64,000 nt of DNA from Lepidodermella squamata (GCA_047495785.1 JBLDXI010000001.1:1860001-1924000), one strand, 5' to 3'. Shown: positions 8,901 through 63,996, counted from the stretch's first letter. Numbers and translations are program-made. Notes: a model not told the origin generated them from the letters alone.

Positions 8901-8995
8901 GAATTGGATGTAGCATTGTCGACGCCGTCGCTTTTGGCGAAAGATAGTAAGGTGATCAAACCCACCACAAACAATGGGTTCAAAGAATTTCTCAT
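5970..8995 (-). CDS. M4 metalloprotease copy B (about 12 exons)
   Basis: Signal MRNSLNPLFVVGLITLLSFAKS; GGNKRMGQYSYG; AYWDGTALYFGDG; IVAHEIGH; NEAFSD; AEYYATGKNDFLI; Thr-rich linker; PPC ending YACYY-TGA at 5970. 11 introns keep frame (one GC-AG at 7550). Confidence 0.9.
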
Positions 8996-9493
8996 TCTGT
9001 GCGGCTATGAAACACGTTATTCTATACGCTTTTAGCTGTTTTTACTCTATAATGTTATACTCCATTTTTTCGTAGAAATTAACGGCACAACACGTAAATG
9101 ATCCGCAAGTAAGATAAGTAAGACGTCTACGAAATCTGTATGCCGTCCGGTTTCGACTTCGTGCTTTTCCATTGCAGAAATGTCCGCGAAGTCAAAAGCG
9201 GATGCTATTTTTTCATTTTTTCAGGGCAAAATGAACCTTCAAGTAATGTCTACCGCAAACTGATCATCACGAACCAGACATTGACCTATCCTGGATGAAA
9301 TCGTCATCAAAGCTTCCGCTTAGAGAGATACCATGCCTTATGTGAATAAACGGACTACATGTAAACAAGTATATTGAATTTTATTGTTCAGATCCCGAAA
9401 ATAACAATAAAATCGCGGCTAATTTTACTAAAAATAGCATCCGCTATTATGGCAAATTAATCGTAACAAAGCGGAATCGTCTCGAATGGAAGC

Positions 9494-12400
9494 TTAAATG
9501 AAGCAGGCGTTGAGGGAAACGTCATCAAACCTGAGAAAAGAGAGTCTTAACACAAAAAAAAACGAAAAGTACAAGAAAAAACTTACGCTTTCGAGGCGTA
9601 AATCATGATGTAGTACCAGCCTTTGACAGTAATTTTCGTCCTAACCCATTCAACACTGCCCTTCCAGAATGGTCGATATTGATCCGTACTTCCCTAATCG
9701 CGATAAAAATGAGTTGGTGATGACTAAAAATAACAAATCTTCCTCTCACCTGGGCAACTGTTGGAATAGATCCAGCTCGGATGTACAAGTCCGCATCACC
9801 TGAGGAAAGTAAGACAATTCGCTATTAAATCCAGAAATGTTTCCAAGTTACCAGTGAATCCGTCGATGAAAACATTCATCCTATCAACGCTATCGGCAAC
9901 GAAAATCTTGAAATACAAAGCCTTGCCATCACCAGCTGCCAGGTCTGAAACAGCTTCATTTTAGCGAATGGTATCAAGTATATAGACAAAAACCTGCCTT
10001 CGTAATCTTCGCAATTCTGAATGATCCTAATGTTATCAGAAGGCGCCGGGGTAGCAGGAACAGGGGCTGATGGGGGCCTCATCGTAGCAACTGTAGGTAA
10101 AGGCCTGTAAGTAACCGGAGCGAAAGTTGGCCTGGTAGCTGCTTGAGTGGTCTGGCGGTTCGGGATAAGCCAGGTAAGCCAAGCTGGGACAGTGATACTC
10201 CACCCAGTAGTAGTAGCCCTAGTAGCCGGGGCAGCAGTTGGTCGGGGCTGGGGTGGCGGAGGCGGCGGGGTAGGTCTGTAAGTTGGACCTGGTGGGGCTT
10301 GGGTCGGTGGTGGCCTGGGTCCAGGGGTGGGCATGCATCCTGAAATATCGATATCCACAGCTTTGAAAGCTTCCATCAAATAACGCGGCTCGCCCCCGAT
10401 CCTGTACTGATTTGCTGAAACTGCCACGTCGCAAGCTGCTTGTTTCATTTTATGATTCTACAAGACCGATTTATGTTATAAAAAAAATATTTGTTGTAAG
10501 AAAAACCTTTTTCCAGAAGGCAGCATTCGCGTTCAAGAAGACCTTCCAAGCGCTTTTAATGTCCCAAGTTGGTGAGGTAGCTAGCTTATAGAAGACGTAG
10601 TTGTAGATGGCACTGCAGTGGTGAGGATCGGAATCTGCTGCGAATTTCGTGATTGACATAGGAATAGTCATATCGCGGAGGTAAGGTCGCTGTTCAACAT
10701 GACCGTATTGCTCATAATTCATAAATATTTCCAAATTCACGGCTTACGGATTTCATGCAACTTGCGCCAATTTTGAAGTCATTTTTGCCTTCTACATAAA
10801 ATTCAAGTGCTTCAGCCATCATGTCCGAAAACGCCTACATTAATCCATGATGCGTGACGTTATTTTAACCAAACAAAAATGCTTGCTACCTCATTCATAC
10901 ACCCAGACTCGCCTTCGTAGATGAGATCCGACGTCATTTGGGTGACGCTGTGGCCGATTTCGTGCGCAACAACGTCAGCACATGTGCACAGCCTGTCAGT
11001 CAATAAATTTTAAAATTAGAAAAATGAAGGCGAAATAAAAGAGATACACATACGGTACAAATGTGGAGCCTCCATCGCCTACATAAAACGCCGAACCATC
11101 CCAAAATGCGTTATCGTACCTTAAAGACCGATGCTTAAAGTTGAGAAACGGGAAAAGCTGGACCTTACTTCACGTTGAAATGCGCGCCAACATTAAACGT
11201 TCCCACCGGGGTGTATTTGTTGATGTCCCGAGAAAATCCTATAATGGAGCGATGAAGGATTAGGTAATTTTAATCCTAGTCAACGCGCTTTACCCCAGTC
11301 AGGATCCAGTAAAAATTGGACAGTTTTATTCGCGTTGTAGAAACAATCAGCTGTCGAAAATAATGTTGAATTCTGAACTTTTGATTGATCATTTTCTCAC
11401 CCATGGGCCCGTAGGCACCATTGATAGGATCATCCGGTCCGCTCTGGCAGTTGTAGGATACCACAGGCGTAGACCCGGGTGAAATTCGGCTGGACCTGCT
11501 ATTCATGTTGTAAACGGTAACTGTCTTAGCGGCGTTTTGCATAAGGCATTGGCCCTGGCTGTTTGTTATAGCAGGCAGCTGAGGGCGATTCGGAGATTCT
11601 CCATAGCGATACCTGATTTTTTAAAACAAACTTGAATCAACCAAGAAAACTTTGCATCGACTCACTTTCCAGTTCTTGTGTTGCCGCCGTAGCCGAAATA
11701 TGTGTGAAGGCCATCCCAAGATTTCAGGACCTAAAAAACTGTCAATAAGGAACGAAGCCAGGTGATTGCCCGAAATTTTAACCTCGCGTTTTCGCATGTC
11801 GATCAAGCACAGGACTCGGAATGGTATATTTTTGACATATTCTAAGCCCCTTATATCAGCTTCAACTGCCAGGGTTTGCGAGCCATCTGCAGCTTGGTAG
11901 AAATAAGTTCGTGTTTTGTTGTCGTAGACCTAAGAAAGACAATTTTCTCCTAAAATTACCAGCTCGAAGTCGAAATTTACTGTATCTCTAGATTCGACCT
12001 CCCAATGGACCTTGCAAATATTGATGGCCGCTGCATCTGGAACGCCGCTGTTGTCGCTTGCAGCTTCCCTCGGAATGCGTCGCAATTTTTGAGGGCCAGA
12101 TGCCGATCGGATCTTAGAAGGTCCAGCGCATAGACCTCGAATAGCTGGCGGTTTGCGAACTGCTACGCCAGAATTCCAAACAGGAATGTTGTCGACAGTA
12201 TGTTCCAGCCTAGATATGACTGACCCATCAGGCATTGTCACCTCTAAAATTGAATTCCATGAAGAAAAATGAAAACAAAAGCAATCGGCATGTACCGATT
12301 CCTGTGGGCACCAAGTCCTCGTTTTCATTGGTCAACTCGAAGATATCCCGAGCTCGAGGGGGAGCTTCATCATCGGCTAAACCTAGGCAAGGATCGTCGT

Positions 12401-12545
12401 CATCCACCGGGGTTTGCTCATCTGAATCAACTACGGTCGCGTTATCATCAGACTTCTCTAAAACCCTGAAATCAGGCCTAGCTATCCGATCAGCTGCGGC
12501 TATGTTGAAGATCAGAAAAAGGAGTAGAGCCTGTTTTATTGGCAT
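9494..12545 (-). CDS. M4 metalloprotease copy C (about 16 exons)
   Basis: Signal MPIKQALLLFLIFNIAAA; GGNTRTGKYRYG; NAFWDGSAFYVGDGG; VVAHEIGH; GCMNE|AFSD; DPHHCS; Pro/Thr linker; PPC GDADLYIRAG, ending NACFI-TAA. 15 introns traced. Confidence 0.9.
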
Positions 12546-12805
12546 TTCTCCTGTTACTCACGAAATTTCAGCTATTACACTGTACGGCTTCTTGAGGCCA
12601 CACATCAGTCATCACTAAAAAATTATTGACGCACTCTGATTATGTGTTTTATTGGCGATTTCACACGTTAAAAGCGAGTCTACTCCACACGAAAAAGCAA
12701 CATTTTTTAGGATCAACATGCGTCACGCCTAAAATGTCGCTAAATAGAAGAAAAGATGGGGAATTTTTTAAATACCTAAATGTCAGTCATAGAGTCACTG
12801 CACGA

Positions 12806-15800
12806 TCAAATCGCGCAAAAATCAAGCTGCAAATCTTGAAATCTGAAATAAATGAAAATTGATAAATGAAACAAAAGAGGTCGGCAAACCCCCTCACCCC
12901 TTGGTCGCAAAAATCATAACGTAGTACCATCCTTTGGTGACTATTTTCGTTCGAACCCATTCAATTGAACCTTTCCAGTAGGGGCGATACTGATCAGGCG
13001 GATTCTTTCGAATAAAACAAGAAAAATTTCCATTATTGATATGAAGACAGAAAGAAATACCGAAGATGTAGTCGGAAGGGTTCCGTTTCTTACATATAAA
13101 TCAGCGTCACCTTAAAAAATCATCTTAAATGTTGAAATGGGAATAAATTGAAGCTCACCATTAGCTGCATCGATGAAAACGTTGATGCGCTCAGCACTGT
13201 CTGGAACCATGACCTTGAAATAAAGGGCGACCCCGTCGTTGGCCGATAATTCTAGACAGAAAAAATCAAGAAAATTGCGATTACCGTAAATAGTAGCCCG
13301 GGCTTATGAATTTTAAATCCCTAAAATTTTAAATTTATTTAAATTTAAATTATTCAAATTTAAAATGAAAAAATGAAAAATCTCAAAAATCTTGGGATAG
13401 CATTATTTTTTATTTTTGGGGCCCTATCATACCCTCCAAACTGGGCTACTAAGAACGATGGGCTTCTATAAGCGAATGGGCGTCTATTTCAACATTTCCT
13501 GCATATAAAATACTTTTTCCTACCTTTGACTGCCTCGCAATTGTTCATCACTGGGATGTTGTCAGTTGGCGAGGCTTTGGTTGTTGCTCCACTTGTCGGT
13601 CTAACTGTAGTCGAAGTCGTCGCATTCAGCCGGGGAAGGGGCGCCCGAGTCGGGGGCGTTGTCGGTTTCGTCGGCTGGAGGGTGATAATCGTCAACCACG
13701 GCGGAAGAGATATGGTGAACGGGCTCGCTTTAGTCGTAGCTCGAGTCGTCGTGGTCGCGGCTTTTGTCGTAGTTGTCGTTGCAGCCGCAGTCGGAGCCGC
13801 CGTGGCAGGGGTGCTAGGCTTCGGGGGCATGCAACTAGAAATATCGATGTCTACGGCTTTGAAAGCTTCCAGAATGTACTGCGGATCTCCGCCGACTTTG
13901 AAACGCGACGCTGTGGTCGCAACATCACAAGCCGCGGTTTTCATGCTATGGTTCTGGAATTTTAAATAAAATCATAAATTTGACAGAAATTTGAGTAGAA
14001 CCTTTTTCCATAGAACGGCATTTGCATTTAAGAACGCTTTCCAAGCTCCCTTAATGTCCCAAGTTGGTGAGGTAGCCAGCTTGTAGAAGACATAGTTGTA
14101 GATCGCACTGCAATGGTGAGGGTCGGTTTCTGGGGTAAATTTGTTGTAAGACATCACGATGGACATATCGCGTAAGAACGGCCGCTTTCAATATAAATAA
14201 GATTGAAGATTTAGGATCGAATTTATTGAAATTTTACAGTTTGCATGCAATTTGCGCCGATTTTGAAATCATTTTTGCCGTTTTGGTAGAATTCCAACGC
14301 CTCGGCCATCATGTCAGAAAAAGCCTGCATAATATAAAGATATAAAGATATAAACCTGGTGAAAAATTCGCCTTAAAGTAACTCGCCTCATTCATGCAAC
14401 CAGATTCTCCAGAATAAACTAGATCTGACGTCATTTGAGTGACGCTGTGGCCGATCTATCAAATAGAGATCATATTAATCTGTAGCCACTTGAATCCGAT
14501 TCTTACCTCATGAGCTACAACATCTTCGCAGGCGCATAACCTAAGAAAGAAAAGTAATTTCGAGGCATTTTGGACGATTTTTTCAACGTACGGTGTGAAC
14601 GTTTTACCACCGTCGCCAACATAGAAAGCAGAGCCGTCCCAAAAAGCGTTGTCATATCTCACGTTGAAATGCGCCCCAACATTGAAAACGCCTGAGGGGG
14701 TATACTTTTTCATATCCTGCGAGAAACCTAGTTAAAATTTTCAATTTCAACGGGATCTTTTGTAAAATAAAACGAAGCCTAACCCCATTCAGGATCAAGA
14801 AGAAATTGAACAACTTTGTTTGAGTTATAAAAACAGTCGGCTAAATAAAATATAAAAAAATCCAACAAATTTAGGTGAATGGCCTCATTTTTTACCCAAT
14901 GGGCCGTATGCTGTGTTGACAGGGTCGTCCGGTCCCGTGTCACACGGGTAGGTCACAACTGGCGTACGACCAGGTACAATTCGACTTGTACTACTTTTCA
15001 TGTCATAAACTATGACCGTTTTATTCGCATTTTGCATTAAGCAGTCTTTTTGATCCGAAGATAGGGAAGGCAGTTTCGGCCGTGTTTCTCCGTATCGATA
15101 CCTAAGTAAAATTGAGAAATAAGGCGTAGGGGAAGTCCGAAACTTTCGCCTACTTTCCAACTTTCGCGTTGCCGCCATTACCGAAAAACGTCGAAAGAGC
15201 GTCCCACGATTTTATGATCTTTTACAAAATAAATTAGAAAAATTTAGGTGATTTCCCAATTTTTCACCTCATTTTTCTTAGCATCGATGAGGCAAATAAC
15301 GCGAAATGGGATATTTTTCGCGTATTCTAGGCCTCTGATATCGACCTCGACCGCGTCGATGAGCGACCCGCCTGTTTCCTGGTACTTGTAAAATTTCGAT
15401 TGACTCTCGTAAATCTCGTCAATATCAGTAAGTTCCCAATGCGTTTTGCATGATTTGATCGCAGTTTCATTCAACGCGTCAAGGTCTAGTGAACTAGCCG
15501 CTTGCCTTGCGACTCTGTTCAGCTTTTTCGGCCCTGAAGCTGATCGAATTTTTGTAGGGCCTGCACATAGACCTCTAATGGGCGGCGGCTGGATCACCGC
15601 GGCTCCAGAATCCCAGACTGGGATGTCATCAACGGTATGCTCAAGCCTCGAAATCACTGACCCATCAGGCATTTGAACCTCTAAATATCGTAGCGATAAA
15701 TATTTGGAAAATTGGAAAGAATCGGATGTTTATTACCGATCCCCGATTCAACCAGATCCTCATTATCGTTGGGCAGGTGAAAAATTTGGCGGGCAGTCGG

Positions 15801-16001
15801 CGGTGCTTCGTCTTCGGGCAAATCTTTGCATGGATCGAAATCTTCAGAATGTTGTGGCAGTTGGAAATCGCCCCGCTTAGCTCGCATCAGCAACCCATCA
15901 TCTGTTTTGAGTTCAGGTACGAAGTCGACCAATTTCCTGTTATTGGAGCAAATCGCTCCGTTTGTCAGCAGGAAAACAGGCAGCAAAATAGCCAACTTCA
16001 T
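12806..16001 (-). CDS. M4 metalloprotease copy D (about 15 exons), closest paralogue of copy C
   Basis: Signal MKLAILLPVFLLTNGAIC; GGNAKVGKYRYG; NAFWDGSAFYVGDGG; VVAHE|IGH split by an intron; NE|AFSD; DPHHCS; PPC GDADLYVRNG, ending DFCAI-TGA. 14 introns traced. Confidence 0.9.
13282..13488. mobile_element. Degenerate MITE-like insertion enlarging an intron of M4 copy D
   Basis: Inverted repeat tagtagccc (13291) / gggctacta (13443), AT-rich core, three tandem gggcNNcta motifs at the right end. The host intron is ~270 nt versus ~50 nt at the same position in copies B and C. Confidence 0.55.
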
Positions 16002-16402: not shown

Positions 16403-18420
16403 TTACTCCGGCAAATTGTAGAATGAGAAATTCGTCACTGAGACCTTCTCCGATGAAATCGGCTTCCTTGAAATGACTAGACCATAGGGCGTTTCGAGCC
16501 GAATCAAGGTGAACTGAAAATTAAACAAATTAAACAAATTACAAATATTCAAAAATCAGGTTTCAATTTATCCAGCAAAAATTAGCGGACTTATTCCTGA
16601 GAGTAACCTCCGTCGTGTTATCCCTCTTCATGAGAAGGATTTCGCCATTCGTCTGTGCTAGGTCGGCACGAGGCTACCGGCGGCGCTCCCCTAAGCTCAA
16701 GCACAAGGCTATCGCGGCCGGTGACAGGAGCCAATGACCGGTATTTGGGCATCTCTGCCCAGCTACTTTCTAGCCGTGGACCGGAGAATTTCAACCCAGG
16801 TCGCAGTTGAACAACGAATGTGTTCCGTGTGTTAACCTGATCAGCGAACTTCAGGCTATAGGCCCGCCCATTAGTTATGAATCATCAACACACATATAAA
16901 CAAAAACGCACTCGAGAAAAAATATCCACCCAGCTCATTTGCATATGCACACAAACAAAAATAATGAGGGGGTAAAAAAAATACTAGAAAATAATAGTAG
17001 TAAACACATACTTTGAATTCTTTACCCGGATCGTCCGTATTGTTATCCTGATTTGACGGAATAGCAATATTCACATCGACGTTTACCACAGTAGGCTCTG
17101 GAATTGCGACTGAATCGCCAACTTTCATCAAATCACTGAAAATTATAGTGAAATATTTCTGAAATTAGGAATTAACAATTGTAATTACGGTGCCATGTTG
17201 TGTATAACAACTGGAATACAATACGGAGCTGAAGATTCGTTAGCCACATCGCATAGACAGAACGCTAGCTCTGCATCAGACTTCGCAAATGCCACGGTTT
17301 TACCAAGCACAACAACGCCAGTATTTTGCCCGACTTGTAATTCAGAGAGAGGCACTCTTCTCAGGCGCAATCCGCTCACAGGGTCTCTACAATAATGAGA
17401 AAAAAATTGAAGAACGGATTTCTCATTTCGGTTCCTCACTTGTATACTCCCAAATCCAAATCACTAATGCTTTGGAGCATTTGCTGAAGCCGCTTAAACT
17501 TAAGGCGGCCCTTTTCTTTGCAAATGGTATTCACTGTTGCGAAAAACTGAGCAATTTGCTCAAGCTTGCTCTTCGGATCCGGCCATGTCGGATCAAGTCT
17601 AGCAGCTTGGACCAAGTCACTAATTGTCGGTTTATACTCGCACAAGTATCGATAGAGCATTGCGCGATTGTAATACATATCAGGTATGGCTCGAATGGCA
17701 GGGTCTTTTTCAGCCTAATAAATGCGTTAAACTTATAGCTCTGAGATCTCAGATAAAAACAGTTCACTCCCTTACTTGAGTATATGCTTGAAGAGTATGA
17801 GTCAGCATCAATCGTTTGTTCGTAGAAACAAAGAACATTGACATGTAGGCATTGCCCAAACATAGCCAAGATTGGCCATCAGTAGGGTCGAGAGCTACAG
17901 CTTGCTTTGCTCTCTCTAAGCTGTCCTCAAGTTGATTAACTCTCTCCTGCAAATTTAATCCAGAATTAACGGAGCCAGACAGTGCTCGAATGGTCATAGA
18001 GACACCGCGAAGACTCGCTTTGTTAGACTTCCATTTCAAAGCATCGGTGAAGCAGTTTTTGGCTGATTGAACGTCTCCTTTCTTCCAAAAACACTCGCCC
18101 AGGAGATTCCACGCTTCAACAGATGACGGATCTAGTTTCACCGCTTTTGATAATGCATCGAAAGCTTGCTGGCTAAAATCTGGCAGCACGTTATTGGCTT
18201 TGCCAACGCATAAAAAATACGAGCTTTTCGAAAGCTTGTTTGCATTCAGTTCTATTAGGTCTTGAACAGCTTGCAACTCAACTTTCAGAAGATCTATTTT
18301 CTTCGAGGCGTCGCTCAGCGGGTGAGTTTCAAAGAATTTGTCCCTGAACTCAAACAGCTTGTCAATGGATAGCTGTACAGCGACGAGAGCATCAAGTTCC
18401 AGATCTTTCTCTGATTCCAT
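16403..18420 (-). CDS. TTC5: Tetratricopeptide repeat protein 5 (5 exons)
   Basis: LFEFRDKFFETH, LSKAVKLDPSSVEAWNLLGECFWKKGD, AKQAVALDPTDGQSWLCLGNAY, C-terminal OB region VGDSVAIPEP and FTLIRLETP. Exons 18420-17776, 17714-17440, 17386-17189, 17135-17012, 16513-16403. Confidence 0.93.
16585..16869 (-). ncRNA. RMRP: RNase MRP RNA, nested in the last intron of TTC5 on the same strand
   Basis: Terminal P1 helix (gcgggcctat / ataagtccgc); P3 with AACACAC internal loop; CR-I GAAATTCTCCG (16792-16782) complementary to CR-V ACGGAGGTTACTC (P4); P8 hairpin ggcta-GAAAG-tagct (GARAR loop); P9 gggca-GAGA-tgccc; P19 hairpin; ~285 nt followed by T5. Confidence 0.88.
16894..16944 (-). promoter_or_regulatory. 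Putative type-3 Pol III promoter elements for the MRP RNA (TATA and octamer)
   Basis: TTTATAT about 25-31 nt upstream of the RNA 5' end and a perfect octamer ATGCAAAT at 16944-16937 on the minus strand. Confidence 0.5.
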
Positions 18421-51764: not shown

Positions 51765-51953
51765 GTGTTGCTCATGCTACCGATTAAGGCCTGCCAGACC
51801 CAGGCGCCGTTTAAATGCGAACATTGCAATGCTGATTACTCCAAAAAGGCCCTGCTACGCATTCATCAATTCATCCGCCACGGAATCGGTCGGATGAAGA
51901 TCGGCGCGGCGCAAGAAACAATTCCAGAAGAACACGCTGAATCGAAGTTGTGA
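51765..51953 (+). CDS. Micro C2H2 zinc-finger gene Z0 (last exon; start uncertain)
   Basis: FKCEHCNADYSKKALLRIHQFIRH. Confidence 0.65.
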   Translation: MLLMLPIKACQTQAPFKCEHCNADYSKKALLRIHQFIRHGIGRMKIGAAQETIPEEHAESKL

Positions 51954-52134
51954 AAAGATATATTCCGCATTTTATATGTTGCTCCTTTGTTGCTCTTGAT
52001 TTTGTAACCTTGACCGAATGAAAAAATTCTACCGTTTCTAGCTCGGATCATATGGGAAATTCTTTTTTAATTTTATAATTTAACGGAGGAATTACGAATT
52101 TTTAATTTTGCAAAGATTTTCGCTAATACAAGTG

Positions 52135-52521
52135 ATGGATAATTGGAACGTTGAGCGGAAGAAATTGCTAGAAGAGATAGCCCAACTTCGCAACGCGAAC
52201 GATCAATTGATTAAGGAGAACGAACATCTGAAAATGATGAAAAAAGGTACTGGAGGCTTATCGGTTTTAATCTGGAAGCATCGGTTTTAATCTGCAAGCA
52301 ATGTTTTGATTATTTCAGAAAACTACGTGTTTCCGGATGAGAAAATTTCCGCCGATCAGACTAGTTGTCATGTTTGTGGGAAGCGATTTGCCACGGCGAG
52401 ACTTTTAGGGCAACACATGCACACGCATGACGCTGTCGCAAGGTTCACCTGCAACGTCTGTAACGCAAGTTTCCGCCATCGCAGCAACCTGTACCGGCAT
52501 GAGAAAAGCCATAAGCAATAA
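52135..52521 (+). CDS. Z1: coiled coil plus two C2H2 fingers (~105 aa, 2 exons)
   Basis: MDNWNVERKKLLEEIAQLRNANDQLIKENEHLK | CHVCGKRF..HMHTH DAVARF TCNVC..HEKSH. Confidence 0.85.
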
Positions 52522-52629
52522 TAAATTTGACCAAGTACCCATGAATCTCCATGAACAATTTTATCATATGAATTTCCTTGTTCTGAATTTACGGGATTTT
52601 CATATTAGCCGATCTTAGGTTTTGACGGA

Positions 52630-53355
52630 ATGGATACTGTATTACACCCAGCCCTAGAAAGCGGCATGGGCCTCTTAGCCGATTTGGGCAAGCGCTACCA
52701 AACGATCGATTTGTTCCTCGACGATTTGGTTAAAACTTTCGATGCAAATTTTGACGCAAAAGTTCGCATGGGAGATGTTATCAAACAGTACATGGCTACC
52801 ATTCAGTCGCTGGTCCACGATCTCAGCTCAGTTTTGACCCTGTTTCAAGAATCTATTTCCGACGAACCCGAGACATGTGTTCCCTCATCGGGCCAGGTGT
52901 TTCGTTCAGCTGGGAATTTTATGTCGAAGCCTAGCGAACCTCTAATGAGTCTTCTCCCTGTCGTGCTGAATCAGTCTTTTTGGAAGTCGTTCCAGAATGC
53001 CGAGAAAACAAATTCAGCTGATGCCCTTATTTCACGGAAATCTTCTCAGCACAATAGACTGGCTAGAAGTTCGAAGAAGAAGAAAGTTGAGTCGAAAAAA
53101 GCTCGTGGCAGACCGCCAGCGTCGAAAAAGGCCTCGGAGAACTCTGGAAAATCTCATAAGAAAAAGTTGACTCCCGACGACCGGCCGCCGAACCCTGTTT
53201 CCGGGATTGGTCTGCGACTGAGAAACAGAACCCCGATTAAAAGATCATTGCTGGACCCTGCCAGCGTGTTCAGTAGCAGCGAGGAAGATATGTCTGAAGC
53301 CGCCGAAGCTACACCGACTCCCGAACTTGAAAATGAAGTCCCAGCAAACTGCTGA
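52630..53355 (+). CDS. Z2: orphan nuclear-type protein with helical N-terminus and AT-hook-like motif
   Basis: 241-aa single-exon ORF containing KKARGRPPA and basic NLS-like tracts; no zinc finger. Confidence 0.75.
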   Translation: MDTVLHPALESGMGLLADLGKRYQTIDLFLDDLVKTFDANFDAKVRMGDVIKQYMATIQSLVHDLSSVLTLFQESISDEPETCVPSSGQVFRSAGNFMSKPSEPLMSLLPVVLNQSFWKSFQNAEKTNSADALISRKSSQHNRLARSSKKKKVESKKARGRPPASKKASENSGKSHKKKLTPDDRPPNPVSGIGLRLRNRTPIKRSLLDPASVFSSSEEDMSEAAEATPTPELENEVPANC

Positions 53356-53542
53356 ATTGCGTTCTTACTGATACATTTTTCTTATTATCGTGATCATTCT
53401 TGTGAATCTCTCTGCTCCAACTCTTTGCCTTTCATTTGCTCTCGTCAGAGTATGTAAATAGCGTGAATTAAAATTGTGAAAAATTCTATTTAATCCCAAG
53501 TTTCAATGATCTATTCGAATTTTATTTCAGTTTCCCGGTAAA

Positions 53543-54185
53543 ATGTCTGGCTCCGAGCTGTCTCCTGAAATGTGTAAGTCAATTTGTTGATCTTTTCGGC
53601 CTGTTCTAGCAATTTAATTTCGTCAGGGAACGGTCAGTTGCCTCGTACTTTTCTATCAAATCTCAAGTTATGATTCACTCAGAGCTGAAGGATCTTGTCA
53701 GGGAGAACAATAAGAGACTCGCCCAAACTTACTTCAAAATGACGCAATTAATGCAAATTTACGGGGTTGCCATGAAAGTCATGCGACGTTAGTTTCTAAT
53801 TTCGTTTTTTCCTTGTTATTGTTATGTTTTTTTTTCAGGTGGTTCAAATCGACTTGCCGACGATCGCGCTTCTTCTGTTGCTTCTATCGCTGAACTAGCG
53901 CCATGGATCAGACCGGTTGATAAGCCCGAATCGGTTGGAAATACCGAAACCAGCCATCCAGTACCCAATAAACCGCCCGTTCCTGTCTCTACTGGCAAGT
54001 CGAAAAATTCAGTGCGCAAGAAACCTCCCGAACCCGCTGAAAAGCGTTCATTACGAAGTTCGAAAAATGCAGCCAGGAGGCGATCGGACGGTGTCCACAG
54101 ATGCAACAAATGCGGCGCTGGGTTTTGGTTCACGGGCGCTCTAAAACGGCACGTAGCCAGTGAACATGGTAGAAAGAAGAAGTGA
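53543..54185 (+). CDS. Z3: helical N-terminus plus one C2H2 finger (3 exons; not in the ORF track)
   Basis: Exon from 53839 is open to HRCNKCGAGFWFTGALKRHVASEH-GRKKK-TGA; middle exon contains QVMIHSELKDLVRE. Confidence 0.7.
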
Positions 54186-54308
54186 TTTATTTTTTGTTAT
54201 AATTTTCGAAGTTCTGTTTTTGATGATTTGCGACACTCGCCTCGCGGCTGTGATGCTCAACTCTTGTAAATTCGCAAATGAATTTTCTTTAGCTTCATTT
54301 TTTAAGCT

Positions 54309-54702
54309 ATGATAAGTCCCCATACCTCGGATGGAAATCGCAAAGTAAGTGACGGATATCCCGAATCGGACGCTGCCAAAACTAGCGAGGATCCAGATCA
54401 AACCAAGGCTGTAGATGATAAGAAAGTTGAAGCATCAAGCTCTAAGTTGTCGCTAGCTGCGTCGGAAAATTGCTTCTACGATGCTGCTGAGAACACCGAC
54501 GAGACCGATGAATTTGTTACAGGTCCTTTTAAGCCATTGTAAATACAGTTTTATTGTGCTATTTCTTTTAGGAGATGAGGATGAGTTGGATTTGATTTCA
54601 GAACGAGCTGTTTTAGCTGAGTTGGTCAATCGTGCAAAGAACATGAAGCGAAGGTTAGGCGTACTTGAAGCGAAGCTTCACATCATGGCTAGCAAGAAAT
54701 GA
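54309..54702 (+). CDS. Z4: small acidic protein with C-terminal coiled coil (2 exons)
   Basis: ORFs 54309.. and ..54702 can be joined by a phase-1 GT-AG intron; ends ERAVLAELVNRAKNMKRRLGVLEAKL. Confidence 0.6.
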
Positions 54703-55235
54703 ATCGAAATTCAACGGATTTTATTTTATTGAGTTTTCGTGCTTTTTATTGTGTTTTGAATATCTGCTGAAAATTGCTGGAACTTGGAAATGCTCGTAAT
54801 GAGGGAACAACTTTTTTTTTTATTTTTTGAGAAATTAATTACCTGATTTTTGCGGAAATGCCAGCCGTTCGAGGCATGAGCGGAATTTTTCGGAGAATTG
54901 GGGTGCCTACTTCCAAGGTTTGATTCGGTGGATTTCAGTTATTTCAGACATCGGACGTTTGGCTCGAATCTTTGACGAACGGTTTGGCAAAACTTGAAAT
55001 GGACATCGTACTAAACTCGTTGAAATTTGAGATTTCAATGATCTTGTTGGCGATGATCCGGAACAAACGGGTTTCGCTGTTTTGATATTTCTCCGCTGTG
55101 TCAAGAAGGTTCGAACTTCAGACCAATTGATGAACTTCAGTGGGTACTATGAGCTATCGAATATCCTGTTTTACCATAGCAGTTAGCTTTGTCCTGCTGA
55201 GTTCAATGAAGGTGGTATTTTCTCCATGTTAGGGC

Positions 55236-55937
55236 ATGCTTTTATCTATGGAAAACTGCGATCCAACTAACCAGTGTGCTATATGCCGCAAGACCTTTCA
55301 CTCTGCCAGTTTGTTATCGGAACATCATCTTCGCCTGCACCCATCGTCTCAACCTACTGAAACTGGCGACAGATATATTATACAAAGTTCAGCGAAATCT
55401 CTTTCAGTTGTTCATGAGAATACAAAAAATCGAAATGCATATCGATGCTCCGCATGTGAAAAAACTTTCGCATTGAGTAGGGAGCGGCGCAGTCACGAGA
55501 AATTGGCGCATGGAATGATTGGTACTGGATCAACCAAGATATCTTGCTTTCGATGTGGAAAAGAATTCGATGGACGAATGCGATTGAGCCGGCATCTGCA
55601 GAGAAGCATTACATGTCATCTGAGTTCAGCTAAACCTACCGCAGTCGTTGAAGCGAGTCGAAACAACACACTTCCGAGCTCTGCATTATTCGGTAAAATT
55701 AATTTTCTGTAACCCCCGAAATTTTACCGTCTTTGATTTATACTTCTAGCCCGCAATCATCGATGTCTGATATGCTTCGAAATCTTCAGAAGGGCGGCTG
55801 ATAGGATAGCACATGAAAGCAAAATGCATGGACTGGTGAAGCGAAAGAACCCGGTATGGACCTGTAAGCACTGTGAAAGGACCTACCGTTATCGAGACAG
55901 GTTGATCAGTCACCTGATGTCTCTTAAAAACTCGTAA
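55236..55937 (+). CDS. Z5: multi-C2H2/C2HC zinc-finger protein (about 5 fingers)
   Basis: CAICRKTF..HHLRLH, CSACEKTF..HEKLAH, CFRC..H..C; last exon CLICFEIF..HESKMH, WTCKHC. Confidence 0.82.
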
Positions 55938-56434
55938 TTGTGATCGAAGTATTGGCTGATATGATACATCTTTTTGATTTCTTTGCTTATTGATATTTGC
56001 TAACTAATTTTCAAGAGTTGTTTTTTGGGTTGCCTTCAGAGACATAGTTCTTATATTTAAGCTAAAAACAATCAATCAATCATCCCATTAGTGGAAAGGC
56101 TGGAAACTTGACTTCAGCAGATTTAAACAGAAATTAACTCGGCTTGCTACTTTGAATTTCTTCGAATTTCGAACGACTTGATCGGAAGTTCTTATTGAAT
56201 CAGTTTTCATCAATCAGCTTATTCATTTGGCCGTGGGCGCTGATGTGAGCTTTGAGAGCTTGGATTGGGCTTTTGATGGGCTATCAGGAATCTCGTCATA
56301 ATTTAGCTTGAATACCAAGAAATGAGTTTTTATTATCATTTGTCGTCCCAGACTTGGGAGTTTTATGCCTCGTGGAAAGGACCACAATTAATTTTTCTTA
56401 AAACGGACTGCATTCCTTTAGACTCAATTATATT

Positions 56435-56854
56435 ATGGACCACAGAGCTTGCGAAGCCGAGATCAGTAAGCTGAAGAGTTCGAACAAGCGCCTGACGGAT
56501 GAGCTGAAATCTCTGAGGCAAATATTAGCCGGTATTCCGAGTTTTAAGCTGATTTTTTTTCATTAGCTATGTTTTATCTTTATTAGCTCACTCGCAGAAG
56601 TTAGCTGACGGTGGAGATTCGGGTCTAAAAAGCGTCCTTCACATGTGCATCGTTTGCGAAAAAGTCATAACGGTGGAAATTTCGCACTTGATTTTTGATC
56701 TTTGAGTTTTTTTCAGAGTTTCTCCTCAAACTCTGCTCTGGTTAACCACATGCCTGTCCACGATGCGGTACCGAGGTTCGCCTGCGAAAATTGCGGCAAA
56801 GCCTACCGTCAACAATGCAATCTATCTACCCACAAAAAGAATTGTTCCGGCTGA
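56435..56854 (+). CDS. Z6: coiled coil plus two fingers (3 exons; not in the ORF track)
   Basis: MDHRACEAEISKLKSSNKRLTDELKSLRQIL | HMCIVCEK | SFSSNSALVNHMPVHDAVPRFACENCGKAYRQQCNLSTHKKNC; near-identical to Z9. Confidence 0.88.
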
Positions 56855-57292
56855 CTCTGAAAATACGAGAGATAATTATAAACGGATTAGTCCTAAAATA
56901 GACATTTATCTAAAATTATGAAGCCGATTCCCATTTACGATTTCCATAGTGTCGTATTTATATCATGTTGAATTGCGCAACCTCATACTATCGAATACAT
57001 TCGTTCATTCACTCCCGAAAGTTGGTTCGATTGATCGGGCCGAATCGAAGCAAGGGTTTGAAAGTGGCTGGAAAAGATCATTGGGTCAAGGGGAAAGCGC
57101 CCATCAAAGCTATTCCAGGTCCTCGTCAAGTTTTGGAGATGACTAAAAAGTAACTGAACAAATTTTTTACTCGGTAGTATCTATGATCAATCAATCATAA
57201 AAACTGAATGTCGGTGGAAATTGGGCGTTTAACCATATTTTAGACCCTATGCTACCTATCGCTTCTAGCTGACTGTTGTCAAATAATAGGCG

Positions 57293-58296
57293 ATGCCGTT
57301 TACTATGAAATGGGTACCAACCGAGGGACGCCTGAAGACGTTTCATTCGACCGATGTATTGGAGGAACATAGTAGCCGCCTTCACAACTCGCTCTTGCCA
57401 CCGCTCCCTTCGGCAGCTGACGATACTGTTGACAAACGTCTGAACTGCATGAAATCTACATCAGATTTTCAAGACGTTGATCCTAATCGAATAGTTGCCA
57501 AAGCTCAGAATCAATGCCATCGTTGCGCCGCTTGTGACGAAACGTTTACATCGGTTTCTGAGCGTCGCCACCACGAGCGTCTGACTCACGGATTTACTAA
57601 TGCTAAATCAGCTAAGATTGCTTGTTCCCTATGCGGAAAATCCTTCAGTCGACGCCCGCATCTCACGAGACATCGGCTGAGTCGGCGCTCGTGTGATTTG
57701 CCAAGTTCGAATGAGCCTAATAATTCCCCAGCTGTGGCCACGAAATTATCTGATTCGGGTGTCAAAAACTTCCTTAACATGTGCATCGTTTGCGAAAAAG
57801 CAATAACGGAGAAAGCGTCAACTTTGACCTTTGATCTTTGATTTTTTGCAGAGTTTCACGTCGAACTCGGCTCTGGTTGATCATATGCCTGCCCACGATG
57901 CTGTGCCGAGATTTCCTTGTGAAAATTGCAGCAGAACCTACCGCCAGCGATGCAGCCTCTCCACCCACATGAAGAGATGTCACCCAGCTATGGCCATGAA
58001 GACGCTCCGCCTGCACAAGCAAGCGACCCGTAAATCGATTCGTATGATATTGATAGGCAATATTATCGGTTTCTATGTTTAATTACCCTTTAGCCCACAC
58101 TCATCAATGTCTGATATGTCCGGAAATTTTCACAAGCTCGAATGATCGAATCGAGCATGAAAGATCAATGCATGCGCTGGTGACCGGGAAGAACACGACA
58201 TGGTCTTGTAGGCAATGCAGTCGGAATTATGGCTCAAGAGCCAGCTTGATCAGGCACCTCGCATCTCTGGGTCATAAGTTGAATAATGGCGAATAG
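57293..58296 (+). CDS. Z8: chimeric zinc-finger gene (Z5-type frame with a Z6-type two-finger cassette)
   Basis: CAACDETF..HERLTH, CSLC, then MCIVCEK|SFTSNSALVDHMPAHDAVPRFPCENC, then CLICPEIF..HERSMH, WSCRQC. Confidence 0.8.
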
Positions 58297-58414
58297 TTTC
58301 ATTATCTTTAGACGTACTTGAATCTATTGTATTATATTTATAAACGTGTAAGAAGCCGGTTGAAAATCCCTTGATGCCGAGAAACTTTTCAAATTCATTA
58401 GAATATTTCTTATT

Positions 58415-58827
58415 ATGGATCACAGAGCTTGCAACGCCGAGATCAGTAAGCTGAAAAACACTGTAAAACGACAGGCGGATGAGCTAAAATCGCTGAGGCA
58501 AATATTAGCAGGTAGCTTTTCTTCTTGGATGTCTTTTGAATAGGGCTGATTTCCTTATAGCTCACTCGCAAAAGTTACCTGATGGTGGAGATTCAGAGCT
58601 CAAAGGTGTCCTTCACATGTGCATCGTCTGCGAAAAGGTTGTGTTTGTTGCATTCTCTTCTGCCCTTCCGATTCTTCGTTTATTTCCAGAGTTTCGCGTC
58701 GACCCGAGCTCTGAGTGATCATATGCCTGTCCACGATGCTATGCCGAGATTTGCCTGTGAAAATTGCGGCAAAACCTACCGCCAGCGATGCAATCTGTCC
58801 ACCCACAGGAAGAATTGCTTCAACTGA
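58415..58827 (+). CDS. Z9: coiled coil plus two fingers, paralogue of Z6 and Z1
   Basis: MDHRACNAEISKLKNTVKRQADELKSLRQIL | HMCIVCEK | ..HMPVHDAMPRFACENC; same intron positions as Z6. Confidence 0.88.
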
Positions 58828-58907
58828 CTATAGAACAGATTCGTTAAATGACGTTCGTAGAATTTCAATTTCCTCTCTTTTAGGGTCTATCCTATATAAA
58901 AACGATA

Positions 58908-59442
58908 ATGTTCACCTGTGCACTGTGCCGGAAAACTTTCAAATCTCTCGATTTGAGGAACGAGCATGAAACCCGCATGAAACCCGTGTGCACGGCGGCA
59001 AAGCAGTTTCGAATTCGACATCGAATACACCGAATCCCCACAAACCCAGTGACGATTCAGTAATATGGACAAAAGTCTTGAAAAAGCGAACCCGCATTCC
59101 GAAATTGGCAAAGAAACCCGTACCCGTTAAATGCTCTAATTGTTCTCGGCAATTTGCAAGCCGCATGCACATGAAACGCCACGTGAAGTTGGGAAGATGT
59201 GGAAAAAGTATCTCTGCTCATTTTATTCAAGTATTAATCGATTTCTGATCATTTTTTAATCAGCTCGGACGCACCGCTGCTTCGCTTGTCCTGTTGTTTT
59301 CCCAAATGCGGTCGATCGGCGTCGCCACGAGGCTTCGAATCATGACAAGCCGCCTTGGAAGTGCCAGCGATGCGGCGCGAGCTTCACGATGTATAAAAAT
59401 TGGGAAAAACATAAATTGAGTGTTCATAGACTGAAAAAATGA
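58908..59442 (+). pseudogene. Z10: Z5-type zinc-finger gene frameshifted by an 11-bp tandem duplication
   Basis: catgaaacccg occurs twice at 58965-58986. Removing one copy restores CALCRKTF..EHETRVH in frame with the downstream fingers. Confidence 0.7.
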
Positions 59443-59590
59443 ACATTCTTTGGTGTCGGGAAACTTCCACCTGGTTATGTAATTAAATAACTGTTATCAT
59501 TTGGAGTAAATGATTCTTAAATTAATTTTCTCATGTGAGCTCTTAGGTGTGGAATTTACTTTGCGTTGATTCTTAAGCCGACTTCACGTT

Positions 59591-60195
59591 ATGCCTCGAA
59601 CTAAGAGTATTTCCGAAGATGTGGTTGGCCTAAGGACGATGATAACCGAAGCGTATGTCACCGTTTCGGACGCAATGGCGACATTAGCCCGCGCGAGTGC
59701 AGCTGTTGACATATTAAGCTCTCAAATTTCAAGTGCTCAAGAGGAAATCTCAGGCTGTACGAAAGCATATATTACCGTCACGAAAGGCTACAAAGCAGAA
59801 GGTTGCGTTGAAACCTGCGTCTGTTCCACCGGCTGAAATCTCGAATTCAGAAAATTTCGAAGGCCAAGCTGAAACCCACGCCTGCCAGGTCCCCTCGAAA
59901 AAGGTCCCCCGAAGAAGGAAAGACTGCTGAGGTTGCAAAAATTATGAAGACGCCAAGTATGACGTTCCATTTTTTATCGGCCATTTTGCTGACGTTCACA
60001 TTTTTTTCCTCAGGCGGAACAGTACTTGTTATCGCAGGAAAGAAGGCCCCCACAATTTCCAAGTTTCGCCAGTGTCCTACTGCTGAGCAGAAGTCGAAAG
60101 AACCCGCTCAATCTTTTCCCTGCTCGATATGCAAAAGGAATTACGTTTCCAGGTCGGGCGTTCTTCGCCACATCGTAAAATTTCACTCGTCGTAA
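59591..60195 (+). pseudogene. Z11: frameshifted duplicate of Z12
   Basis: Homology to Z12 is spread over three reading frames (MPRTK.., QKVALKP.., KAKL..EVAKIMKT) with an internal deletion; the first frame stops at 59836. Confidence 0.7.
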
Positions 60196-60499
60196 TTTGG
60201 CTAGTCTTGGTCATCTTTCATATTTTCTTCTATAAAACGACATATAGAACATAAATTGAGTGTTCATAGACTGAAAAATTGATATTCTGTGACGTTGGGA
60301 GACTTCAACCTGTACATAATATTTGCTATTTTTTTGAGAATGAGAATCTGTACAGCTGTTTTCAAACAAGTCCTAGGTAGTCATTTTATTTCGAAGAATT
60401 TGATTAAATTTCATGTTTTTTATGTGATCTTTTTTAGTGTTAAAGAGGTGTATATTTTCAAGATACACTTTGCTTTGATCTTTGAATCATCTTCACATA

Positions 60500-61221
60500 A
60501 TGCCTCAAACTAAGAGGAGTGTTTCCGAAGAGGTGGTAGGTTTGCGTAACATGATTTCCGAAGCTTACATCAGCATTTCCGATGCCTTGGCCACCCTTGG
60601 TCGAGCGAGCGCAGCTGTTGCCATTATAAGTTCGAAGCAAGGCGCTGAAGAGGAAATTACCGACTATCCGAAGGCTTACATTCCCCCCAGGACTGCTTTC
60701 GCGAAGCAAAAGAAAAAGATAAGTGTCATGCCTAATGCAATGGCTACGATCGACTCTACTCCGGTTAATTTACCTCCATCGGTCAATAATGATTCAGAAA
60801 AATCAACGGGGATTCGAAAAGTTGAAGGGAAGCAGAAGCGAGAAAAAGTTGCGTTGAAACCTCCTTCTATCCAATCGACGGCCCCTAAGGCCAAGCTGGA
60901 AACCGCGTCTGTTAAGCCTCTCCGAAGAAAGTCCGACGAAGGATGGAAGACTTCTGAGGTCGCTAAGATAATGAAAACTCGAAGTATGATTTTTCTATTG
61001 TCCATATTTCTGGAGTTGACATTTTTGTCTCAGGTGGAACGGTACTAGTGATTGCAGGGAACAAGGCATCAACCATTTCCAAGTTTCGCCAGCGGCCCAG
61101 CGCAGAGCCCAAATCGAAAAAATCAGCCGATTCAACGTCTTTTCCCTGTTCGATATGCAAACGGAATTACGCTTCTAGGTCCGGCGTCCTTCGCCACGTC
61201 AAGAAATTTCATTCTTCGTAA
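60500..61221 (+). CDS. Z12: helical N-terminal module plus one C2H2 finger (2 exons)
   Basis: EEVVGLRNMISEAYISISDALATLGRASAAV; last exon FPCSICKRNYASRSGVLRHVKKFH. Confidence 0.82.
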
Positions 61222-61450
61222 TATTTGGCTAGTAAATGGTCATCTTTCCTAGTTTTCGTAGCACTTGAACTTAGTTACCTTATTACCTTCTCAACCGAAT
61301 ACAACATTCGGATGAGAACCGGCATCCTGCTATTGGAATCTAAAAACTGAATAAATAAAATGAATATAATCGATCTGATCTGGTCATTTCATAATTTATT
61401 CTGAATTTAGATTTTGCGAGTTACCTGAAATCAATTCGAGTGGTGTTAAT

Positions 61451-62013
61451 ATGAACGAGGAATTGGATGAAATTCGGAACCTTATCGGCAAGGCTTATCT
61501 GTGCATTTCTGATAGCTTGGCGGTCCTTGCAAACGCTAGCGTAGCTGCCAGCCAGCTTCAGGCAAGAGCATCGAATATTTCGTCTTCTGTCCGGAAAAAT
61601 CGGAAAATTCCGTTGATTCCCAAATCACCACCCGAAGTTACGAGGAAGACGCGTGGCAGGCCATGCAAAGCTTCCTTGGGCGCTATCAGATCTATTCGAA
61701 AAAAATTGCTGATTGCCAAAGCGCAGAGAATGCGAAAGAAAGCTTCTTCAGGTATCAATTTTTTAGTGCGTGTTTTTTTGGCATTTTTTGGCTACTTTTA
61801 GGAGTCGAATCTTCGGCGGATGATTGGAATAAGCTTGTCCGGGAAACCTTCAGACACCGTCGAGGAGGAATCACTGCACCATCAAAACGATCGAATACTC
61901 TGTTTCATTGTCATTTGTGCCCCTCTATGTTGGCAACGCGAGCTAACTTGACGCGCCACGTTGCCACCCTCCATCCTTGCCGCAGTAGTAAACGAAAAAT
62001 GAGGCCGAAATGA
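61451..62013 (+). CDS. Z13: helical N-terminal module, AT-hook-like motif, one C2H2 finger (2 exons)
   Basis: EELDEIRNLIGKAYLCISDSLAVLANASVAA; RKTRGRP; FHCHLCPSMLATRANLTRHVATLH. Confidence 0.82.
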
Positions 62014-62212
62014 GGATTTCAAAGGATTTTGAAAGCATTGACTTTCCACTTCAAAGTTCGACAAACTCTGAATTTTCATGTCATCTCAATTTTTTGTCCC
62101 GTGAAACATTTTGTAAAGCTATGAGAATTTATTATCTCGACCCTGGAAAAATATTCGCTCCCACACTTGTTTTATTAGGAAACTCTTGGAATCTTAATCT
62201 CAAGTCGTTTGA

Positions 62213-62503
62213 ATGGCGAAGGAAAGATCGTTAGCGAAGCTCGATGAAATGCAGTCTAGCTTATTCCGTCTAATTCAAAAGTCAGGTTTGGATGATACGA
62301 TTCGTTCTTTTGCCGTCGAGCAGGTGAAGGCGATCAAATACTTGCGCGAGCTCATCGATCGGGAGTGGCCGGATGCTGCTAAGATTGCTGGCGGCTACAA
62401 CTTCGAAATGACGCCTGAAAATTCCTGCCCCATTTGCCTGAAAACTATCTCACGGAAACGCGACCTGAAGCGGCACATTGCCACGGTTCATACACGTAAA
62501 TAA
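62213..62503 (+). CDS. Z14: 96-aa helical module plus one C2H2 finger
   Basis: Single-exon ORF containing CPICLKTISRKRDLKRHIATVH. Confidence 0.85.
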   Translation: MAKERSLAKLDEMQSSLFRLIQKSGLDDTIRSFAVEQVKAIKYLRELIDREWPDAAKIAGGYNFEMTPENSCPICLKTISRKRDLKRHIATVHTRK

Positions 62504-62732
62504 ATTTGGGACCATACTCGGGGTGGAAGTCAATTTTCTTAAGTATTGTTGAATGGAGTACGCTGAATTTTTCATGGAAAATGATTGCAATTTCATCTCT
62601 TTTCGTAAATAAATCTATAATCGTAAATGAATGAAAATTTCGAACTTGCTGATTTCAGTTTCATTTTTAATATGGCGACATGATTGGAGGGTTTCAAATT
62701 TTTTAGACTTTAAAGAGTGGCTAAATCCCTCA

Positions 62733-63199
62733 ATGGCGAAAGCAAAGTGCTTGAAATTAGTAGAATCGATGAGATCTTCCATGACGAATTTGATGATCGA
62801 ATCTGAACTGAAGGAACCCGACATGCGATGTCCGCACGAACCAGCCATAACGAAGCAAGTCGAAATGCTCAAACAGCTTGAACACGAAATTTCGGCGAAT
62901 TGGGCTGATCCAACTGTTCCTAAAACGAAACGTAACCACGCTTTTCCAGGGGTAAAGAAATGGTGTTGCATCTTCATTTCAATTTGTTAGTAGTAGAAAC
63001 TGTTTCCTACGCTTTTGAGAACTTGGCTGAAAACGTTTGTCCGGTCTGCGGTCTTGAAATGAAGAACAAATTGGTCGTGAAGGGACACATGGAGGCTCGT
63101 CACAATCCGAATCCGAAAAAGTTCCAATGCGACAAATGCGAAAAGTTCTATTTGTTTTCTGGAAGCTTGTCTAATCACAAAAAGAGCGCTCATCAGTGA
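62733..63199 (+). CDS. Z15: helical module plus two C2H2 fingers (2 exons), related to Z14
   Basis: MAKAKCLKLVESMRSS..IESEL..KQVEMLKQL; intron 62932-~62990; CPVC..HMEARH, FQCDKC..HKKSAH. Confidence 0.85.
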
Positions 63200-63280
63200 C
63201 GACTTATCGATTATATTATTTATCTAGCTGTTCTCCCGATTATTTTTAGATTCTCTATTTAATCTAAGGCAAAGTGAACA

Positions 63281-63996
63281 ATGTCAGGTAAGAAAAATCT
63301 AATTTATTAGGGTTGGATGTAGCATTTGTTATAGGCGATGAGCTGAATCGTGACGAAACAGCCCTGCAGGCTATCGATGATATCGGGCAGGGCTGCCTTG
63401 GAATAATGGAAAGCCTCTCCGCAATCGAATCAGGCCTAGAATCATCGATTCAAAGGCGCCTTATCCTCGAAACCCTCACCTCTCAGCTCATGAAAGTTGA
63501 GTACCTGAAATCCTACATAACTCGTAATTCGTTATTATAATTTCTGCTCTTGAATTTTTTGTTCCTTTTATCAGATGTGATGGGTCGTAAGTCAGCAACT
63601 GGTAAACTTATTCACAACTTGACAAACAAGGTTTTGACGAATGGCGTTGTGAAATCGAATCGCGGCCGGAAACCTAAGCTAATATTGCCCGCGAATTTAC
63701 CTCTGGCTCCGTTACCTCCTCTAAGTGAATCTTCAACAAAATCCCATAACCCAACTCCGAATCCGTCTGTTGTCCCGTCGGTGGAAGTTATAACGATAGA
63801 CGATGATGTGACTAGCAGCAGTACTCCGACTTCGAAAGCTTCGTCATCGGTGAAGTCAAGTGGAACTAGCTTAGTCTCATCAAATAGTGCCACTCAGTCT
63901 TATCCGACGGTATTTGCCTGCCGATTATGCCCTTATTTCTATTGCTCGAAGAAGGATTACGCGCAGCACGTTGAAATTGCCCATGCAGGTGGATAA
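63281..63996 (+). CDS. Z16: helical module, AT-hook-like motif, one C2H2 finger (3 exons)
   Basis: ATGTCAG|gtaag micro-exon; IESGLESSIQ..QLMKVEYLKSYIT; NRGRKPK; FACRLCPYFYCSKKDYAQHVEIAH. Confidence 0.82.

Follow-up and report, generated by a model that had tools for sequence, protein, structure and literature searches.

A same-strand cluster of small C2H2 zinc-finger genes with operon-like spacing in the gastrotrich Lepidodermella squamata

Sixteen small genes on one strand

A 64,000-nucleotide (nt) stretch of the Lepidodermella squamata genome (GCA_047495785.1, JBLDXI010000001.1:1860001-1924000), referred to here as the window, carries a dense array of small genes, most of which encode C2H2 zinc-finger proteins. 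A three-frame map combined with splice motifs yields 16 gene models (G1 through G16), all on the + strand, that span window positions 51774 to 63996. This count and orientation agree with an earlier reading made from the sequence alone, which had proposed about 16 genes on the + strand with an operon-like layout. The models have intact frames, apart from the two copies G10 and G11 that are discussed below, and their coding sequences fill 7780 of the 12,223 nt of the array to give proteins of 59 to 295 amino acids (aa). Eighteen introns of 47 to 72 nt split 12 of the genes, and all but one, which is of the GC-AG type, have GT-AG ends. The sequence-only reading had listed a series of microprotein open reading frames (ORFs); the small genes are indeed real, but several of the listed ORFs are exons of genes with two or three exons. 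The models, all on the + strand, are as follows.

G1, 51774..51953, +: single exon, 59 aa, one C2H2 finger
G2, 52135..52521 (exons 52135-52246, 52319-52521), +: 104 aa, subfamily A; coiled-coil-like helix at the N-terminus and two C2H2 fingers
G3, 52630..53355, +: single exon, 241 aa, no zinc finger; helical N-terminus and AT-hook-like RGRP motif
G4, 53543..54185 (exons 53543-53573, 53638-53787, 53839-54185), +: 175 aa, single C-terminal C2H2 finger; first intron modelled only
G5, 54309..54702 (exons 54309-54522, 54572-54702), +: 114 aa, no zinc finger; acidic region followed by a C-terminal helix
G6, 55236..55937 (exons 55236-55692, 55750-55937), +: 214 aa, multi-finger C2H2, subfamily B
G7, 56435..56854, +: three exons, 103 aa, subfamily A; coiled-coil-like helix and two fingers, the first split by an intron
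G8, 57293..58296 (exons 57293-57799, 57852-58029, 58094-58296), +: 295 aa, five fingers
G9, 58415..58827, +: three exons, 103 aa, start 118 nt past the G8 stop
G10, 58908..59442, +: multi-finger, subfamily B, frameshifted
G11, 59591..60195, +: older tandem duplicate of G12, large deletion in the linker
G12, 60500..61221 (exons 60500-60983, 61034-61221), +: 223 aa, subfamily C; long N-terminal helix, basic linker, one C2H2 finger
G13, 61451..62013, +: two exons, 170 aa, subfamily C; helix at the N-terminus, AT-hook-like RGRP motif, one finger
G14, 62213..62503, +: single exon, 96 aa, subfamily D; predicted helical hairpin and one C2H2 finger (Pfam zf-C2H2, E = 1.8e-4)
G15, 62733..63199 (exons 62733-62931, 62991-63199), +: 135 aa, two fingers, subfamily D; intron modelled only
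G16, 63281..63996 (exons 63281-63287, 63335-63523, 63575-63996), +: 205 aa; helical exon, RGRK linker, one finger; start 81 nt past the G15 stop

From G1 to G16, successive stop codons and ATGs are separated by 181, 108, 187, 123, 533, 497, 438, 118, 80, 148, 304, 229, 199, 229 and 81 nt. Six of these gaps measure 80 to 148 nt, six measure 181 to 304 nt, and the remaining three (438 to 533 nt) precede G6, G7 and G8. The six tight gaps reported in the sequence-only reading (108, 123, 118, 80, 148 and 81 nt) are all reproduced, albeit under a different gene numbering. Its remark that little space is left for promoters holds for the short gaps, but not for the three longest, which could accommodate promoters. 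No minus-strand gene interrupts the array, and candidates for such genes proved to be only short antisense ORFs. Upstream of G1 lies a spacer of 1.15 kb, followed by a divergent ion-channel gene on the minus strand. At the other end, G16 coincides with the end of the window, and the array may continue beyond it.

Protein families of the array

A search with the pattern C-x2-C-x12-H-x3-5-H/C finds C2H2 motifs in 14 of the 16 genes, with one to five fingers each. The zinc-finger content that had been ascribed to the whole array is thus real, with the exception of G3 and G5. Pfam scans of the array proteins return C2H2 and nothing else, and the matches to zf-C2H2 or zf-C2H2_4 (in G6, G8 and G14) fall at or near the cut-offs.

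All-against-all comparison resolves four paralogous subfamilies. Subfamily A (G2, G7 and G9) combines a coiled-coil-like N-terminus with two fingers, the first of which is split by an intron. Members of subfamily B (G6, G8 and G10) are multi-finger proteins. In subfamily C (G11, G12 and G13), a helix at the N-terminus is followed by a basic linker and a single finger, and subfamily D comprises G14 and G15. The architecture of subfamily C recurs in G16, in G4 and in the finger-less G3, and AT-hook-like RGRP or RGRK motifs are present in G3, G13 and G16. In contrast to the detectable paralogy of the other members, G1 (a lone finger), G3, G4, G5 and G16 are related to the rest by shared architecture only.

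The N-terminal parts of the proteins are blank in Pfam, with no KRAB, ZAD, BTB or SCAN effector domain. AlphaFold2 predicts one long helix for G12 (residues 3-54, with a predicted local distance difference test score, pLDDT, of up to 98) and a two-helix hairpin for G14 (pLDDT ~80-87). A Foldseek search with the G14 model recovered generic helical hairpins only, all with E > 0.4 and none with E <= 0.001. Most of the proteins have a predicted amphipathic helix or hairpin at the N-terminus, which is likely to be a dimerization module, followed by a basic linker, in some cases with the AT-hook-like RGRP motif, and by the fingers, which suggest that the proteins would bind DNA. The sequence-only reading tentatively placed them in germline or transposon control.

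Searches for relatives were carried out in several ways. No homologues outside this genome were found for the G3 or G8 ORF in the sampled sequence libraries, and no transcript contig on record matched the exact G14 and G3 proteins. Pattern scans of metagenomes gave 0 matches for the 5′ end shared by G7 and G9 and 2 bacterial matches for the shared finger, which were judged to be chance. An exhaustive search with a profile of the N-terminal helix (built from G12, G11, G13, G16 and G3) had as its sole match a 2655-aa repeat protein, and this was likewise dismissed as chance. The array proteins are orphans in the sense that they lack relatives among the sequences sampled.

Duplication, decay and selection

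Comparisons among the members make it evident that the cluster grew by repeated tandem duplication accompanied by exon shuffling. Neighbors are paralogous in protein and DNA: G7 and G9 share 81-82% protein identity (81% in the codon alignment, 82% by BLASTP), G11 and G12 are ~77% identical in DNA over coding and flanking sequence, and G6/G8/G10, G14/G15 and G2/G7/G9 form further related sets. Tandem duplication alone suffices to explain the common orientation of the 16 genes.

G8 is a mosaic of G6-like exons and one and a half exons from the end of a G7-like gene. In exon 1, fingers of the G6 type are fused to the half finger that exon 2 of G7 encodes. Exon 2 corresponds to a last exon of the G7/G9 type that has no stop and is read through, and exon 3 is again of the G6 type. 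The first intron of G8 is the GC-AG intron, whereas its counterpart in G7 is GT-AG. A second trace of rearrangement is a 35-nt remnant of the 3′ end of G10 (59408-59442), which recurs with 97% identity directly after G11 at 60248-60282. Given the ~77% identity of the surrounding duplication, this remnant indicates that the unit duplicated between G11 and G12 began in the last exon of G10.

Two members appear to be decaying copies in this assembly. In G10, an 11-nt tandem duplication (CATGAAACCCG twice, ~58966-58987) shifts the frame within the first finger, and the frameshifted gene is still transcribed and spliced. Two frame changes are needed to align G11 with G12, and G11 is therefore either a pseudogene or a gene rescued by a candidate 44-nt intron at 59803-59846. 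Ratios of nonsynonymous to synonymous substitution (dN/dS) between paralogs are 0.15 for G7/G9, whose dS is ~0.8, and 0.12-0.13 for the ends of G11/G12. Values in the range of 0.12-0.17 indicate purifying selection, and an arms race driven by positive selection was rejected on the same values. Of the rapid evolution that the sequence-only reading had envisaged, the lineage-specific duplicating family and its two decaying copies remain, but the proteins themselves are under constraint. The regions upstream of the paralogs G6 and G8 showed no conservation and no shared promoter element.

RNA and DNA contigs

Contigs from sequencing runs were compared with positions 53400-59399 of the window. One run is RNA with thin coverage, a second is DNA, and a third yielded nothing. 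The first run behaves as RNA, as evident by contigs that omit the introns at 53788-53838 (G4), 55693-55749 (G6) and 59208-59263 (G10). For the G9 intron (58638-58689), loose contig ends at 58637 and 58688 continue into the next exon, which brings the introns backed by RNA to four. Five genes (G4, including its last exon, and G6, G8, G9 and G10) are expressed, with RNA coverage at low depth; coverage of G5 and G7 in this thin run is zero.

The DNA run differs from the window by ~2% and carries many indels. Those in exons are in frame (3 nt in G4 and 9 nt in G8), whereas indels located in introns and spacers do not come in multiples of three, a pattern that supports the interpretation of these models as real coding genes. 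For one stretch, this run holds both exact contigs (depth ~48) and divergent contigs (depth ~75-100), which indicates that two haplotypes or strains are present.

With these data, it is possible to consider whether some tight neighbors, instead of being separate genes, represent alternative exon blocks, or wrongly split ones, of larger genes in which a donor of the upstream unit would be cis-spliced to the acceptor preceding the following ATG. G8 demonstrates that such fusions can arise, since it joins G6-like and G7-like blocks through a G7-type last exon that lacks a stop, and acceptor-like sites do lie directly before downstream ATGs. However, the upstream units end in an in-frame stop, in an exon that is confirmed or modelled as terminal, and none of the joints listed for the RNA run connects two units. 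We consider this explanation very improbable.

Two peculiarities of the RNA contigs were also recorded. One contig matches only the 53 nt at 57039-57091, is unlike the sequence on either side, and has edges without splice signals; it probably derives from another locus with a short repeat in common. Many contigs also contain joints between opposite strands, 85-250 nt apart, that look like palindromic artefacts of cDNA amplification and not biology.

Acceptor-like sites upstream of start codons

Spliced leader (SL) trans-splicing requires a 3′ splice site without a partner donor, and the sequence-only reading had pointed to T-rich tracts ending in AG at 53530, 54306, 56421, 58401 and 62706. All five exist, 2-26 nt before starts. 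A position weight matrix (PWM) built from the 18 local introns places a candidate acceptor 3-44 nt before every one of the 16 ATGs. When each upstream 60-mer was shuffled to give a null distribution, every one of the 16 scores lay above the median of that null (Fisher combined p = 0.001), and the coding strand outscores the opposite strand in 14 of the 16 upstream regions (Wilcoxon p = 1.5e-4). The distance from acceptor to ATG is 13 nt in both G7 (AG at 56421) and G9, despite a dS of ~0.8 between them. The candidate sites are as follows.

TTGTTATAG, ending at 51752, +: acceptor-like site before G1 (PWM)
TTTCAAATTCATTAG, 58387..58401, +: acceptor-like site before G9, 13 nt from the ATG; putative trans-splice site
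51752, 52115, 52608, 53530, 54292/54306, 55232, 56421, 57268, +: AG ends of acceptor-like sites from G1 onward (PWM)
58883, 59546, 60462, 61420, 62178, 62706, 63249, +: AG ends of further acceptor-like sites (PWM)

A k-mer search of the spacers found T-rich words only, and an Rfam scan found no SL RNA family within the 64-kb window. On the minus strand, pyrimidine-rich AG sites likewise occur within ~20 nt upstream of the starts at 50620 (cys-loop channel), 43888 (MFS transporter), 18420 (TTC5) and 8995 (M4 protease).

The acceptor-like sites are difficult to reconcile with conventional splicing where genes are closest. Gaps of 80-148 nt, in a genome region where introns occupy at least 47 nt, are too short to accommodate a 3′ untranslated region (UTR) and a promoter as well as a 5′ exon with its intron, and the acceptors therefore do not derive from ordinary 5′-UTR introns. 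For these gaps, trans-splicing of a shared transcript would be the simplest reading.

Transcription units

We favor the interpretation that this locus is a lineage-specific, tandemly duplicated zinc-finger cluster in which tight neighbors probably form short operons resolved by SL trans-splicing, and we assign it a probability of roughly 0.55. Local duplication and exon shuffling would have built a same-strand cluster of small genes resembling those for transcription factors. Neighbors separated by 80-190 nt (G1-G5, G8-G11, G15-G16 and perhaps G12-G16) would be co-transcribed as short operons, and their transcripts would then be separated by 3′-end cleavage together with trans-splicing at the acceptors that precede the ATGs. 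The spacers of 438-533 nt before G6, G7 and G8 would probably hold separate promoters. The short spacers typical of SL operons are found in these sub-blocks and not across the array as a whole.

Several observations weigh against this interpretation. Considered gene by gene, acceptor scores differ from those of shuffled sequences at p < 0.05 in only five of 16 cases, and the canonical AATAAA is missing from most of the short gaps. Acceptor-like sites also precede unrelated genes whose upstream regions are long (the ligand-gated ion channel, MFS, M4 protease and TTC5 genes). The pattern of an acceptor before the ATG is thus genome-wide, and it fits a general use of SL trans-splicing without being specific to operons. 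The sequence-only reading is partly supported: a site precedes each ATG of the array, but the same motif precedes unrelated, widely spaced genes and is no specific mark of operons. For the cluster, the RNA run, which lacks coverage of 5′ ends, revealed neither a leader nor a polycistronic precursor nor the 5′ end of any transcript: its loose ends carry no leader, none falls at any acceptor, and its depth is zero at the acceptor sites 53530, 54306, 56421 and 58401. Similarly, no contig in this thin run bridges a gap between array genes. Finally, the RNA is patchy, in that G4 is covered and G5, only 123 nt downstream, is not, and G6 is covered and G7 is not; this is a weak point given how thin the coverage is.

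The same observations bear on the possibility that the genes are independent, each with a very compact promoter of its own, located in the spacer or toward the 3′ end of the preceding gene, and that the acceptors either serve SL trans-splicing of monocistronic transcripts, with removal of outrons, or stay unused. The array would in that case be a duplicated cluster without being an operon. Acceptor-like sites before unrelated genes that have long upstream regions, the patchy RNA between neighbors and the three gaps of 438-533 nt would all be expected on this basis. RNA detected 215 nt or more before the G8 start codon, around position 57078, could represent either a 5′ UTR or an outron. Furthermore, organisms with a single SL also add the leader to monocistronic genes, and acceptor use does not separate operonic from monocistronic trans-spliced genes (PMC7986045). 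However, the 3′ UTR and poly(A) signal of one gene and the promoter and 5′ UTR of the next would have to fit into gaps of 80-123 nt, which is very tight. Independent transcription of all the genes seems to us somewhat unlikely.

The opposite extreme, which the sequence-only reading had preferred, is a single polycistron of ~16 genes driven from one promoter upstream of G1. Location on one strand throughout, with no minus-strand gene in between, and an acceptor-like site before every gene speak for such a unit. Moreover, median operon spacers range from 31-57 nt in Oikopleura and ~110 nt in Caenorhabditis to 517 nt in Trichuris (PMC7986045), and the longer gaps are compatible with the last of these values. 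However, the shared orientation is already accounted for by tandem duplication, three spacers measure 438-533 nt, and RNA coverage varies, with none over G5 and G7, which lie between genes that are covered. Known animal operons mostly contain two to eight genes. A single 16-gene unit is therefore improbable, and we retain short operons among the tight neighbors as the preferred arrangement.

Comparison with known systems

The SL operons of nematodes (of the C. elegans SL2 type), tunicates (Ciona and Oikopleura) and flatworms resemble the array in their same-strand genes, spacers of ~80-190 nt and unpaired acceptors. They are defined by a leader on the mRNAs and by a polycistronic precursor, whereas the array is known by its spacing and its acceptors, and it includes three spacers of 438-533 nt. 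Classical SL operons also contain mostly unrelated housekeeping or germline genes, in contrast to the paralogous putative regulators found here. Our literature search yielded no publication on trans-splicing or on operons in gastrotrichs, and the paper that describes the L. squamata assembly, which reports 43% GC, is silent on introns, trans-splicing, operons and zinc fingers (PMC11660948).

As a gene family, the array is more reminiscent of the KRAB-ZNF clusters of mammals and the ZAD-ZnF clusters of insects, which are also lineage-specific, same-strand sets of C2H2 genes that arise by local duplication and include decaying copies. In both cases a non-finger module precedes the fingers, as it does in the array. 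However, the array proteins are far smaller (one to five fingers, 59-295 aa), have no KRAB, ZAD, BTB or SCAN domain according to Pfam, and carry as their N-terminal module a helix or hairpin that is predicted to be simple in form and for which no homologues were detected. The genes are also spaced 10-100 times more tightly.

A third likeness, which we offer as a functional analogy only, is to single-finger DNA binders with basic flanks, of the type of the GAGA factor of Drosophila. In G13 and G16, a basic, AT-hook-like stretch lies ahead of the one C2H2 finger, and G3 has the RGRP stretch alone. The array proteins lack the BTB domain and show no significant sequence similarity to GAGA factor; G14 matches the Pfam GAGA family weakly (E = 0.0039, below the cut-off).

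Significance

The locus is a real and well-delimited zinc-finger gene cluster with operon-like spacing, and it is probably functional. On present evidence, its interest lies chiefly in being a well-defined, lineage-specific cluster of this kind. If the tight pairs are indeed co-transcribed, they would constitute operons composed of young paralogous regulators, in contrast to ones made of unrelated housekeeping genes, and this in a phylum from which no operons have been described. Each new transcription-factor paralog would then arise within an existing shared transcription unit, which would bear on how the expression of duplicates can diverge when they are unable to gain a promoter of their own. 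The full combination, in which a duplicating family of minimal C2H2 regulators, built of a helix, a basic or AT-hook-like linker and one or two fingers and without homologues outside the lineage, is expressed from SL-resolved operons in a gastrotrich, is a possibility that we advance only tentatively.

Two practical points follow from the gene structures. Gene calling based on ORFs would split or miss small multi-exon genes such as these, and the predicted trans-splice sites of the cluster form a convenient test set.

Other features of the window

The remainder of the window (GC ~43%) has the character of a compact animal genome and contains tRNA genes, an RNase MRP RNA gene, and genes for a tektin, TTC5, a cys-loop channel, a nuclear receptor and M4 proteases. 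Two of these features have the following positions.

3247-16001, minus strand: tandem set of several genes for thermolysin-like (M4) metalloproteases; HExxH motifs, long linkers rich in threonine and proline
16590-16863, minus strand: RNase MRP RNA gene, a full-length Rfam match of 86 bits, beside or inside TTC5

A tandem set of M4 metalloproteases is unusual for an animal genome. The best named relatives of the tektin exon are spiralian (Lingula, molluscs and annelids, 61-66% identity). The tektin ORF is also found, at 92% protein identity, on a 4.2-kb metagenome contig in ENA that stops short of the zinc-finger cluster, and this match indicates that a related species was present in that environmental sample.

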